Below are positions 1 to 51,914 of a stretch of 51,997 bases of DNA, piece by piece. The stretch is from Octopus bimaculoides (lineage: Eukaryota): NCBI RefSeq assembly GCF_001194135.2, contig NC_068990.1, positions 14,462,846 through 14,514,842 on the forward strand, given 5' to 3'. The translations under genes and the position numbers were made by a program. Every line of letters starts with the position of its first letter. The stretch's first letter is position 1. Under the pieces are notes generated by a model, which was not told the origin of the DNA, made no database searches, and saw only the letters and a list, made by a program, of their open reading frames with translations.

Positions 1-1892
1 CGTTGCTGATGGTGCAACAGATGTTGTTGCTGACGGTGCAAGAGTTGTTGTTGCTGCTGTTGCTGTAGTCGTTGTTGCTGGTGGAGTAGTTGTTGTCGCT
101 GATGGTGCAGCGGTCGTTGTTGCTGAGGGTGCAGCCGTTGATGTTGCTGATGGTGCAGTAGATATCTCCGTCGTTACACCAGACGTTTGCTCAGAAACTA
201 CAACTGTAGGTGTACTTGCAGCAGTTGTTGTAGAGGGCACAATTGTGGTTGCTGTGGTCCCAGCTGTTGTTGTTGTTGCAGTACCAGTTGTTGCTGATGT
301 TCCCGTGGGAGATATTGCTGTTGTAGATGTTGTTTCTGTAGCAGTACTCGTTGTTGCTGATGGTGCAGCAGTCGTTGTGATTGCTGTTGTAGCACTTGTT
401 TTCACAGATGGTGCAGTAGTCGTTGCTGATGGTGCAACAGTTGTTGTTGCTGATGGTGGAGCAGTCGTTGTTGCTGATGCTNNNNNNNNNNCGGTACCAG
501 TTGTTGCTGATGGTGCAGTAGTTGTTGTTGCTGATGGTGCAGTAGATATCTCCGTCGTTACACCAGACGTTTGCTCAGAAACTACAACTGTAGGTGTACT
601 TGCAGCAGTTGTTGTAGAGGGCACAATTGTGGTTGCTGTGGTCCCAGCTGTTGTTGTTGTTTCAGTACCAATTGTTGCTGATGTTCCCGTAGGGGATATT
701 GCTGTTGTAGATGTTGTTTCTGTAGCAGTACTCGTTGTTGCTGATGGTGCAGCAGTCGTTGTTATTGCTGTTGTAGCACTTGTTTTCACAGATGGTGCAG
801 TAGTCGTTGCTGATGGTGCAACAGTTGTTGTTGCTGATGGTGCAACAGATGTTGTTGCTGATGGTGGAGCAGTCGTTGTTGCTGATGCTGCAACAGATGT
901 TGTTGCTGATGGTGCAACAGTTGTTGTTGTTGTTGCAGGACTTGTTTTCACAGATGGTACAGTTGTTGCCGATGATGCAGTCGTTGTTGCCGTCGATGCA
1001 GCAGTTGTTGTGGCTGATGGTGCAGCAGTTGTTGTTGCTGTTGTAACACTTGTTTTCACAGATGGTGCAGCAGTTGTTGTTGCTGATGGTGCAGCAGTTA
1101 TTGTTACTGATGGTGCAGCAGTTGTTGTTGCTGATGGTGCAGCAGTCGTTGTTGCTGATGGTGCAGCAGTCGTTGTTGCTGATGGTGCAGCAGTTGTTGT
1201 TGCTGATGGTGCAGTAGGTATCTCCGTCGTTACACCAGATGTTTGCTCAGAAACTACAACTGTAGGTGTACTTGCTGCAGTTGTTGTTGAGGGCACAATA
1301 GTGGTTGCTGTGGTCCCAACTGTTGTTGTTGTTGCGGTACCAGTTGTTGCTGATGGTGCAGTAGTTGTTGTTGCTGATGTTGGAGAAGTCGTTGTTGTTG
1401 CTGTTGTAGCTGTTGACACAGAGTATGTTGTTTGAGGTACAGCAGTGGTCGATGATGCCATAGTTACACCAGATGTAAGTTCTGAAACTGTAACAGTAGG
1501 GGTATGTGCAACAGTTGTTGATGCTGTAGTAGTTGTTGTGGTTGCACCAGTTGTTGTTACTGATGGTGTCATAGTTGATGGTGCTGGTGTTGCAGTTGTT
1601 GTTGTGGGTTTAGCTGTTGTTGATGAGGGTGATGCAGTAGTTGTTTTACTAAGTGTCACACTAGTTGCAGTAGGAGCAGTAGTTTTTGCACTGGAGCTTG
1701 CAGTGGTTGTTGCATAGGCAGTAGTTGTTCCCGCAGCTGCGGTAGTTGATATTACAGTTGGGGAAGCAGTTGTAGTTGCTGTTGGAGAGACGGTTGTCGT
1801 TCCTTCTGTTTCTGTGTACGCAGTTGCTGCTGTTGTTTTCATACTACTTGTAGTTGCTATGGATGTCGTCAATGAACTCAGTTTTGTTGAGC
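1..1892 (-). CDS. Large mucin PTS exon (~630 aa, Thr/Ala/Ser/Pro-rich, APSATTTA repeats), runs off the window
   Basis: Acceptor ttttctcttctccag|GC (phase 1): GSTKLSSLTTSIATTSSMKTTAAT... The frame is open to position 1 and preserved across the 10-N gap at 482-491. The ORF track shows only its antisense Val-rich shadow. Confidence 0.9.
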
Positions 1893-3789
1893 CTGGAGAA
1901 GAGAAAACAACTCTCATTAATAAATTTTCAATATTCTATTCTTTATATTTTCCCCAAATATTTTATTCTTTCATGATATTTTTTGATATTAATATCTACA
2001 GCTTAAACACATATTAACTTTTAATGCAATGAGTATGTCAATGGTAGGTTTGCTTAAACCATTATGTATTTTAGACTCATCAAGCTGCGCAATATTGCAG
2101 TTGTGGCAGATACTGGTGTCACACAAATTGGCACTCATGCCAGTGACACGTAAACACACCCCGGTGTCATGCAAATGGCACCCATGTCAGTAGCATGCAA
2201 AGGTATCCATTACACTCGCAGAGTGGTTGGCATTAGGAAGGACATCCAGCCACAGAAAACCACGCCAAATCAGACTGGAGTCTGGTGCCGCCTTCCAATG
2301 TGCCAGCCCAGTCAATCTATCCAGCCCATGCCAACATGAACAACAGACGTTAAATGATTATGATGATATATATATATTTCATCATCATCATTTAACGTCT
2401 GTTAAATAAATATATATATATATATATATATATATATATATATATATACACACACAAGAATAATATAATATGAGGAAGCAGAATATCAGACTTTAATAGT
2501 AGCTCGCAACATTTGTTTCTGCACTGTACATCAGCCTTTAGATACTGTGTTTGCATTCTGCAATGCAGAAACAAATGCTGTGATCTACTATTAAAGGCTG
2601 ATATCTTCCATCCTTGTGTTATATTATTCTTGTATTAATCTTACACAAAGAGGAGTCCCACGTGTGCCCAGCCCTGGAATATATCCTACTGTAGGATATC
2701 ATGTAGTAGCCAGGTAGTGACTTAAGAGCTATTAAATGCATGTTATGAGGTCTTCACCTAAATTATATTAAATATATATAGCTGCAGATGTAGCTGCATG
2801 GTAAGAAGCTTGCTTTCCAACCACATTGTTCCAGGTTCAGTCCCACTGTGTGGCACCTTGGGCAAATGTTTTCTACTACAGCCACAGGCTGACCAAAGCC
2901 TTGAGCGGATTTAGTAGATGGAAACAGAAAGAAACCTGTTGTATATTTAGGAATATATATATCTATCTATGTATGTGTGTGTCTTCGTGTGTATGTGTGT
3001 GTATGTGTCCACCATTTGATGGCCAGTGCTGGTGTGTTAACGTCCTCATAACTTAGCAGTTCAGCAAAAGAGACTGATAGAATAAGTACCAGGCTTTAGA
3101 AAGAAAAGTACTGAGGTTGATAAATTCAACTAGAAGTTCTTCAAGACAGTGCCCCAGTATGGCCACAGTTTACTGACTGAAACAAGTAAAAAGTGAAAAA
3201 ATAAGAGGTGTATGTGTGTGTGTGTGTGCGTGAATGTGTTTGTGAGAGTGTGCATGGTATATATATGTATGTATAAATACAAACTTGTTCTCAGTTCAAA
3301 TATGCTTGAGGCATACTCAAACCCATAGGAAAGCCATTCACTCTGTGTGTGTGTGTGTGTTTGCTGTGTGTATGCGCATGTATGCATGTGTGTGCGTGTG
3401 TGTCAGCAATCTGGATAGCTAAAATTAGTTATTTAATAAGACATTAAATCTAAGAAACTGTGAGATTACAAACCTGTTGAAGTCTTAGTGTATTTTGGCG
3501 TCAGTGGAGAAGTACCAGTGGCTGCAATAAAAATGAATAAAATATTGATTAGACTTAAACAAAGCAATTTGATTATTTTTGTGAGTAAAGACCTATCAGG
3601 TGAAGTGAGCTCATATTATAAAACTCAAAGAAGATAAAAAGTAAAATGGACTACACTAAGATTTGTATTCAGAACAATGGTGTTACTAGTGAAATAGAAT
3701 TAGCCATCTGGTTACATATTCTTATAATTTTGTCTACCCAGAACTATGCATTGATTCATCAGTATTGGTATTAGATTGGCTCTCTGTTG

Positions 3790-4082
3790 GTTACAACAAC
3801 AAGGGCTTCAGTTGATCCGATCTACGAAACAGCTTGCTTGTGGCTAAACACTCCACAGACACATGTACCATTAATATAGCTTTTAGGGAGATTCAGCGTA
3901 ATACAGAATGTGACAAGGCTCACCCTTTGAATTACAGGCACTGCAATTTTTGCCAGCGGAGTGGACTTGGAGCAATGTAAAATAAAGCGTCTTGCTCAAG
4001 GACACAATATGCCACCAGAAATCGAACTCATGACCTTATAATTGGGAACTGAATACCCTGACCACTAAGCCACACTTCTTCG
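3790..4082 (-). mobile_element. Degenerate tRNA-derived SINE (family D)
   Basis: Minus-strand head gtggcttagtggtcagggtattc...gagttcgatttc...ttgtgtccttgagcaagac. Related copies at about 5745-5942, 6655-6832, 37095-37408, 39885-40165, and a tail end at 16155-16180. Confidence 0.65.
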
Positions 4083-51319: not shown

Positions 51320-51418
51320 ATGCCCTTCCTAAGCCATGCCCTTCCTAACGCCATGCCCTTCCTAAGCCATGCCCTTCCTAACGCCATGCCCTTCCTAACG
51401 CCATGCCCTTCCTAACGC
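51320..51418 (+). repeat. 16/17-bp minisatellite atgcccttcctaa(c)gcc x6, emerging from an 857-N gap
   Basis: Direct reading of six units. Confidence 0.9.
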
Positions 51419-51766
51419 TATTCATATAAATTGACATTACACATCCTCTGCTTCTCAAAGCTAGCTAGTCTCATCCACCACTCAGGCATTACTTACCCAC
51501 TCATCTCTCCATCATCCTTTGTTCATCGAAACTCACCTTTCCTTGTACTAACCCCTATCCCAATCTTTCCTCCCCAGAACATTGTCCCACTGAAATCTCC
51601 TTCCAGCTCATGTGTTTTTTATAACTACTGATCTGCAACAGTTTAAACTAGACATTAACAGCATCACTCTTACCAGCACCAGAGGGCCTGCAAGGGCCAT
51701 GGGCTCTGTCCTTTCCTCCAGACTCACCAAATAAAACTAAAATTGAATTTTAAAAAGTATATTTAC

Positions 51767-51914
51767 CACAGTAAGGACAGCATTTTCCAAACATATAATA
51801 CTTTTTATACGGTGGGAAGCACTCAATGTCGCAAACTGTTGTATCACAATCAATGCTGTTCACTCCAACACAAGTACAAGTTTTGCAGTTGTTTACACTC
51901 CAGGTATCATTGAT
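51767..51914 (-). CDS. Exon: VWC (von Willebrand C) domain, INDTWSVNNCKTCTCVGVNSIDCDTTVCDIECFPPYKKYYMFGKCCPYC
   Basis: Acceptor tttttgttttag|ATC, donor TGTG|gtaaat; 148 nt, phase 0-1. W-x4-C-x2-C-x-C ... CC-x2-C pattern of VWC. Not in the ORF track. Confidence 0.85.

Follow-up and report, generated by a model that had tools for sequence, protein, structure and literature searches.

An Octopus bimaculoides gene, LOC106875009, with VWF/mucin-type modules, two predicted divergent discoidin-fold domains and probable downstream mucin-like exons

Does a stretch of 51,997 nucleotides (nt) of the Octopus bimaculoides genome (RefSeq assembly GCF_001194135.2, contig NC_068990.1, positions 14,462,846 to 14,514,842; hereafter the window) encode a single secreted protein in which cysteine-rich modules are joined to mucin-type tracts rich in proline, threonine and serine (PTS), and to which family would such a protein belong? 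The coding signal of the window lies entirely on the minus strand, and by exon-to-exon alignment the window is the 3' part, the last third of the annotated gene, of LOC106875009, an uncharacterised gene spanning 118 kb in assembly GCA_001194135.2. Its RefSeq product, XP_052827192.1 ("uncharacterized protein LOC106875009", 3066 aa), was reached through a cluster of profile-search matches, and in blastp and tblastn comparisons its residues 2395-3057 are 96-100% identical to the window exon by exon. The initial annotation, made from the letters of the DNA alone, had described a hidden giant hybrid protein. Its core proposal, that a single large gene on the minus strand encodes a secreted Cys-rich protein of the VWF/mucin type, is borne out; "hidden" was too strong for the Cys-rich part, which is present in RefSeq as LOC106875009, but holds for the mucin-like PTS exons, which are missing from the current model. 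We regard it as probable that LOC106875009 is a member of the VWF/gel-forming-mucin/hemolectin superfamily carrying divergent discoidin-fold domains (here termed D domains) and, more likely than not, PTS exons downstream.

The exon chain of the Cys-rich part was rebuilt by hand from six-frame open reading frames (ORFs) and splice sites. A first version contained ten exons (E1 to E10) from 51914 to 22954, all with an AG acceptor and a GT donor, encoding 574 aa without a stop. The RefSeq protein revealed two additional mini PTS exons, E5b (35865-35900) and E6b (31659-31706), both AG/GT and of phase 1-1. The resulting chain of twelve minus-strand exons is AG/GT throughout, phase-consistent and stop-free over 602 aa. 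The continuous frame that had been predicted for the whole stretch therefore holds from 51914 to 22954; it holds only partly for the PTS part, where two exon ends lie in gaps and a 10-N gap breaks the frame as drawn. When the 602-aa product was aligned to RefSeq residues 2395-3023, 600 of 629 aligned columns were identical, and 27 of the other 29 columns belong to two indels. This agreement with an independently predicted protein is far beyond chance. The first indel is a 4-codon insertion (HNQT) of RefSeq between E2 and E3 that was not found in the sequenced window; these codons probably sit in the gap at 43492-44453. The second arises at E8, where RefSeq uses a more distal donor (28919 vs 28988) and gains 23 non-PTS residues.

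The order of elements inside the window is VWC, a six-Cys module, TIL-like, VWC, TIL-like, D1, PTS linker and D2. E1 (51767-51914; 98% identical to residues 2395-2445 of XP_052827192.1) encodes the C-terminal half of a VWC domain whose first half lies upstream, outside the window; this VWC is significant in Pfam (E=5.9e-7, 30.1 bits against a cut-off of 27.6). E2 (48477-48554, AG/GT, phase 1-1, XP residues 2444-2470) had been called an LDLa domain, a call that is not upheld: the exon encodes a truncated module of 24 aa with six Cys and an acidic tail, RRCTDVFNCDNRCDCPNCIDELENC, its C3-C4 and C4-C5 loops are shortened relative to LDLa, against the length of about 40 aa and the six Cys with a C-x-D-x-S-D-E calcium cage that are typical of PF00057, and it had no Pfam match at E<=10, while the same search detected an LDLa near residue 1710 of XP_052827192.1, upstream of the window (E=3.4e-7). 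E3 (43168-43370; 98.5% identical to XP residues 2474-2541) contains a 10-Cys TIL-like module, without a Pfam match, and the start of the second VWC, which continues through its middle part in E4 (41143-41259, phase 0-0; 100% identical to XP residues 2542-2580) to its end, CCETC, in E5 (38228-38285; XP residues 2581-2600). The spliced E3-E5 domain has the expected Cys spacing and a sub-threshold Pfam match (E=0.0084), so that of the two VWC calls the first is confirmed and the second falls short of significance. The other TIL-like module, also with 10 Cys, is E6 (34338-34481; XP residues 2611-2660), with the expected Cys spacing and a Pfam TIL match below threshold (E=0.027-0.056); neither of the TIL assignments is thus sustained by Pfam. 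The four exons singled out as absent from the ORF list (51767-51914, 41143-41259, 38228-38285 and the PTS exon at 1-1892) do have canonical AG...GT borders on the minus strand.

Small PTS exons are already interleaved among these Cys-rich exons. E5b is a 12-codon linker, ASTEFPLTTTIG, and E6b a 16-codon linker, IMTTTLASTETTPTL; E9 (25375-25452, AG/GT, phase 1-1) has 26 codons, and its peptide FTTLSSTSTSTLVPTTTTPPVITTQ is present in the XP sequence. E8 is a PTS linker in its short form (28988-29032, donor CAC/GTAAGC, the slash marking the splice junction), and RefSeq uses the longer form 28919-29032, both forms being in frame. The RefSeq extension (28919-28987) consists of 69 nt beyond the strong GTAAG donor and encodes a hydrophobic, non-PTS segment, RKLSSPLFISWLFSSTESNCLAS, between two PTS linkers; it may represent intron retention in the model. 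The two D domains, modules of 140 aa, occupy one exon each: D1 is encoded by E7 (29482-29919; 100% identical to XP residues 2677-2821) and D2 by E10 (22954-23367; 100% identical to XP residues 2886-3023).

The family assignment comes from the part of the protein encoded upstream of the window. A Pfam scan of XP_052827192.1 detected three VWD (E=7.5e-78), three C8, four TIL and five VWC domains. The three VWD-C8-TIL assemblies form an N-terminal array, the arrangement expected of the superfamily, and the VWD domains that had been expected outside the window are thus present. In comparison with structures, residues 160-1250 are collinear with D1-D2-D'D3 of MUC2, MUC5B, MUC5AC and VWF (E=1e-174 to 1e-186; these vertebrate assembly names are unrelated to our D1 and D2). 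After the array come TIL/VWC/LDLa cassettes with short PTS linkers between them. Between VWC cassettes, at residues of about 1850-1985 (IALKDFGTEF...KLTAVEPYIC, outside the window), there is a segment that by eye resembles a degenerate beta-sandwich module, and neither the D profile nor Pfam matched it.

The D domains required structural comparison. XP_052827192.1 contains three of them, at residues 1404-1550 (outside the window), 2676-2821 and 2887-3023; the two in the window, D1 and D2, are paralogous and 34% identical to each other (E=1e-25). The initial annotation had called both of them discoidin domains, and the fold is now supported by a predicted structure. An AlphaFold model of D1 built from a 30-sequence alignment has a mean predicted local distance difference test score (pLDDT) of 95.2 and a predicted template modelling score (pTM) of 0.89. 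A Foldseek search with this model returned 29 matches at E<=1e-3, the best solved structures being FA58C/CBM32 domains, among them the C domains of snake factor V (E=2.6e-6) and the b1b2 domains of neuropilin-1/2 (template modelling, TM, score 0.62-0.70), together with CBM32 modules, IFT25 and a Bacteroides F5/8 type C domain. An earlier model from two sequences (pLDDT 54), whose Foldseek matches were not significant, was replaced by the 30-sequence model. In the 30-sequence alignment the last Cys is invariant and the first Cys is the majority residue, several rows beginning after it. As modelled, D1 and D2 have the discoidin/FA58C (CBM32-type) beta-sandwich fold, and the prediction makes them very likely remote homologues of FA58C.

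Against that homology stands the lack of any direct match at the sequence level to Pfam or to PDB sequences, the discoidin call being founded on the predicted structure and one intermediate sequence. Neither D1 nor D2, as single exons or in the spliced core, matched F5_F8_type_C (PF00754) in Pfam at E<=1; the D profile gave noise only against PDB sequences, and hhalign of the D profile with one Pfam-confirmed FA58C domain gave a probability of 23% over 25 columns. PF00754 matches one of 30 members of the D family (E=3e-4). The D domains form a divergent subfamily outside the reach of the Pfam PF00754 model. The intermediate sequence is a mollusc-like fragment (P0011) that mirrors the middle of the octopus protein: its D copy passes the Pfam F5_F8_type_C model (E=1.7e-9, 38.3 bits against a cut-off of 28.2) and has weak matches to lactadherin and factor VIII C2.

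Relatives of the D domains were collected by an exhaustive profile search, started from the D1/D2 alignment, of 1.84 billion representative proteins, which yielded 54 relatives. They include a "mucin-2-like" protein of the chiton Liolophura sinensis (XP_064614628.1) with seven copies, and Macrostomum proteins in which EGF domains, three VWD-C8-TIL units and TIL/VWC modules are followed by 4-5 D copies; many others are single-exon fragments from metagenomes and read assemblies. In homologues, D domains and PTS segments alternate in one chain. An Anopheles ankyrin protein among the matches was rejected as spurious, and one further match is a bacterial Big_1 protein. An ENA metagenome contig (ERZ21867824 ctg91886l, L001 positions 1175-12069), eukaryotic in character with 37% GC, carries six tandem D exons of one domain each; no PTS ORFs were found between them, which makes it a D-only array in an animal. 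Word-index searches with the 574-aa core, a PTS junction peptide and the 30-sequence D profile gave 0, 0 and 1 matches, respectively; they missed the near-identical 3066-aa protein and, being uninformative, were not used.

Downstream of D2 the window contains three large PTS exons on the minus strand with at least 977 visible PTS codons. PTS-A (16281-16406) starts at an AG acceptor and enters the gap at 16181-16280; the sequence beyond this gap is non-coding, which places the 3' end and the donor of PTS-A inside the gap. PTS-B (9437-10359) has at least 306 codons made up of 14/19-aa repeats, TTGASVPTTESTPV, and ends at a donor GCAG/gtactg of phase 1; its 5' end and acceptor are swallowed by the gap at 10360-11114. 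A 10-N gap at 9762-9771 crosses PTS-B, and as drawn the open frame shifts by one there; from the 42-nt repeat unit we infer that the true fill is 2 mod 3, which would restore one frame. PTS-C (1-1892) begins at the acceptor ttctcttctccag/GC in phase 1, has at least 630 codons and runs off the window. Its composition is 40% T, 20% A, 14% S and 8% P, and a 128-aa higher-order repeat in it contains nested 8-aa APSATTTA repeats. A second 10-N gap (482-491) falls inside PTS-C; the PTS frame is the sole one open to its left and right, and continues unshifted as drawn. In the neighbouring repeat copy, the positions that best match the left and the right flank as paralogues are separated by about 300 nt, and probably repeat sequence is missing here, of a length not fixed by the drawn 10 N. 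The only junction between large PTS exons that is visible at both ends and in phase joins the donor at 9437 to the acceptor at 1892, both phase 1. The gap at 7496-7614 is intronic, between two interspersed repeats, and another (16939-17709), within the intron that precedes PTS-A, may conceal exons.

It could be argued that such tracts are non-coding minisatellites, in which open frames arise as a by-product of stop-free repeat units: they are highly repetitive, they are missing from the one annotated model recovered for LOC106875009, and the last tract has an open frame on its antisense strand too, of 477 codons. We consider this very improbable. The three large PTS exons are, from the features of their sequence, clearly coding and not minisatellite DNA because all 13 of the reported repeat periods are multiples of 3 (among them 42, 57, 99, 156 and 198 nt in PTS-B and 24, 45, 63 and 384 nt in PTS-C), because two parts without repeats, about 200 codons at the 5' side of PTS-C and about 90 codons at the 3' side of PTS-B, have no open frame other than the PTS one, and because each exon end outside gaps (the acceptors of PTS-A and PTS-C and the donor of PTS-B) is a canonical splice site in matching phase. 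The composition in T, S and P is moreover that of a mucin domain. The V/A/G/D-rich plus-strand ORFs at 2-1432 and 9418-9807 are antisense mirrors of PTS exons (2-1432 of PTS-C) and not genes.

Whether these exons belong to the same gene as the Cys-rich chain is a separate matter. On balance we favour their being further exons of LOC106875009, a single gene: they share its strand and order, their phase class, 1-1, is that of eight upstream modules, and short PTS exons are interspersed in the Cys-rich chain itself. The fusion was asserted too firmly in the initial annotation; it is unproven, if more likely than not. Several observations count against it. The RefSeq protein ends 43 residues past D2 by way of two short exons, 21686-21785 (DFWKNSGTNTVLIH..., neither PTS-rich nor Cys-rich, AG/GT, 100% identical to XP residues 3024-3057) and 20500-20530 (LPQTSDLHT followed by a TAA stop at 20500-20502), and joins no large PTS exon. 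The junction from D2 to PTS-A is in phase only through the weaker of two adjacent acceptors, ttctag/TA at 16406; with the stronger one, tttcag/TG, a stop follows 14 codons later. Two PTS exon ends, and possibly entire exons, are concealed in gaps. As regards the mucin character of the product, neither the RefSeq model nor the window, which the last PTS exon leaves at position 1, showed a CTCK, a CysD or a C-terminal VWD.

The RefSeq model may be correct as it stands: the gene would end shortly after D2, and the PTS exons would form another mucin-type gene, or another transcription unit, farther downstream on that strand. The stop at 20500-20502 and the weaker acceptor of PTS-A both fit such an arrangement, and the gap at 16939-17709 could conceal a signal-peptide first exon. 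We nevertheless judge it unlikely, if with a real chance of being right. In the sequenced part of the 10.3-20.5 kb interval between D2 and the PTS exons, a scan for a plausible first exon with a signal peptide gave only microsatellite artefacts, and GCA_001194135.2 has no other gene annotated in the 10 kb downstream of LOC106875009. The RefSeq tail (DFWKNSGTNTVLIHNKNL...), being neither PTS- nor Cys-rich, gives the impression of an arbitrary ORF, the homologues combine D domains and PTS in one chain, and repetitive PTS exons are often dropped by gene predictors. It has also to be asked whether the PTS repeats were mis-scaffolded beside the gene in a gap-rich draft. The window does have 13 gaps, amounting to 8% N, one of them with duplicated flanks that are 99.6% identical (23529-23812 and 24004-24287), and the flanks of gap 482-491 match non-contiguous positions of the neighbouring repeat copy. 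Such an error seems highly improbable to us when all 14 located exons, from 51914 to 20500, have the same order and orientation as in a protein predicted on an independent chromosome-level assembly, and when the PTS-B donor and the PTS-C acceptor are phase-matched across an intron-like stretch with one gap. Under the single-gene reading, which we retain, the RefSeq model is probably truncated at its 3' end, with the PTS domain left out, and an extension of the LOC106875009 gene model by at least 1,000 aa is likely.

The 5' end of the model also appears incomplete. No signal peptide was found on XP_052827192.1, whose start falls inside the first VWD region in alignment to MUC2. The gene directly upstream in GCA_001194135.2 is modelled as a 320-aa EGF-rich fragment with a faint OTOGL_N match, and the flatworm homologue has EGF domains N-terminal of its VWD units. 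Because a signal peptide is lacking and the neighbouring EGF fragment resembles the N-terminus of the flatworm homologue, the RefSeq model is probably 5'-truncated, and LOC106875009 and the upstream fragment may be one gene. A literature search on the locus name or on octopus with hemocytin found nothing specific.

The window as a whole is AT-rich eukaryotic DNA with abundant microsatellites and interspersed repeat families, and its 13 N-gaps contain 4,190 N in all. A SINE-like family of about 300 bp occurs in introns in both orientations, with copies 86-95% identical, at 7200-7495, 11949-12250, 13296-13582, 18976-19265, 24855-25128, 28346-28643 and 41995-42285; its ORFs (LRTGEPDG...LQLDALPNANHSE...) are repeat artefacts and not genes, and ARAGORN found no tRNA-like head on it. 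Two further intronic families have copies that are 75-91% identical, one of about 400 bp (2799-3199, 14243-14645, 22413-22826, 7618-7841 and 47148-47362) and one of about 200 bp (8674-8868, 23405-23622, 27766-27982, 39216-39432, 44920-45122 and 45927-46093). The direct copies that flank the gap at 23813-24003, about 160 bp upstream of the D2 exon, look like a gap-closure artefact of the draft assembly. A 71-aa minus-strand ORF at 37861-38073 (SPLDFFFWGLLKEKIY...) had no Pfam match at E<=0.1 and may resemble the C-terminal part of a mariner/Tc1 transposase. Searches of the window for tRNAs and for Rfam families were negative.

What such a protein might do can be proposed from its modules. In VWF and MUC2/5B, the VWD-C8-TIL module drives disulfide-linked multimerisation. 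The Thr/Ala/Ser/Pro-rich exons downstream would encode a long O-glycosylated mucin domain absent from the RefSeq model, and the product would be secreted as a disulfide-multimerised, heavily O-glycosylated gel or as a clot or adhesive polymer, in which the PTS tracts would form a hydrated glycan brush. By analogy with what has been proposed for hemolectin/hemocytin and for C domains generally, the discoidin-fold modules may serve as binders of glycan, lipid or matrix that cross-link the gel or clot. It is about an even question whether LOC106875009 encodes more than 4,000 aa and is a gel-forming mucin proper of a cephalopod, with an unannotated O-glycosylated domain after two discoidin-fold domains that belong to an unmodelled FA58C-like subfamily, one that occurs as tandem arrays of single phase 1-1 exons in mucin-like proteins of molluscs, a flatworm and metagenomic eukaryotes. 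If so, it would represent a lophotrochozoan "lectin-mucin" design, with modules that bind glycans and tracts that bear them combined in one polymer. The present analysis corrects and extends a cephalopod gene model; recognition of a discoidin-fold family that escapes PF00754 would improve the annotation of invertebrate mucin-like and hemolectin-like proteins, and for octopus biology the protein is a candidate for a structural role in mucus, adhesive or clot.

Among known systems, SCO-spondin likewise combines VWD, TIL, LDLa, FA58C and VWC. Identity with it was rejected: neither thrombospondin type-1 (TSP_1) repeats nor EMI were found in the Pfam scan of the 3066-aa octopus protein, which has one true LDLa only, outside the window, and SCO-spondin itself has many TSP_1 repeats, an LDLa cluster and no mucin PTS domain. 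With MUC2, MUC5AC, MUC5B and VWF the octopus protein shares the collinear N-terminal D1-D2-D'D3 (E of about 1e-186) and VWC modules and, if the PTS exons are joined to it, the long PTS tandem repeats in very large exons. In contrast to these mucins and VWF, neither the RefSeq model nor the window showed a CysD, D4 or CTCK, and the Cys-rich TIL/VWC cassettes precede the main PTS tracts rather than follow them. Vertebrate gel-forming mucins are not known to carry discoidin-fold domains.

Hemolectin/hemocytin (Drosophila Hml; Goto et al. 2001, as cited in PMC4948705) is, like the product envisaged here, a VWF-related secreted clotting/adhesion protein. Insect hemolectin is built from three VWD-C8-TIL units, F5_F8_type_C domains and two more VWD units, and in some insect proteins the F5_F8 domains have small PTS domains close by (Lang et al. 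2016, PMC4948705). The octopus protein has F5/8-type C domains after its first three VWD-C8-TIL units by predicted fold, but these domains fail the Pfam F5_F8_type_C model, and, unlike the 3+2 layout of hemolectin, no two further VWD-C8-TIL units follow the discoidin domains in XP_052827192.1 or in the window, past which the gene may extend. Another close counterpart is found in the mucin-like VWD proteins of Lophotrochozoa, a group described as having more mucin-like proteins, with the F5_F8 domain as their hallmark (Lang et al. 2016, PMC4948705). Octopus and Macrostomum lignano (PAA50248.1, A0A1I8G0U9) both have three N-terminal VWD-C8-TIL units, and in these lophotrochozoan proteins the same divergent D/FA58C-like domain recurs in several copies toward the C-terminus with PTS linkers between. 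The octopus protein has 3 copies, as against 7 for the chiton model XP_064614628.1 and 4-5 for Macrostomum, and at the end of the Macrostomum protein there are only about 50 aa of PTS, while the octopus locus has about 1,000 or more PTS codons downstream, if joined. The earlier view that the combination does not fit one named family was thus too strong, given the hemolectin layout and the lophotrochozoan F5_F8 mucin-like proteins already on record (PMC4948705). Since mucin-like proteins with F5/8-type C domains have already been described for Lophotrochozoa, the octopus gene is of a known kind: LOC106875009 is an uncharacterised, ordinary member of a known invertebrate family and not a new protein class or system, to which the present analysis makes a modest addition, a likely gene-model extension and a divergent discoidin subfamily.

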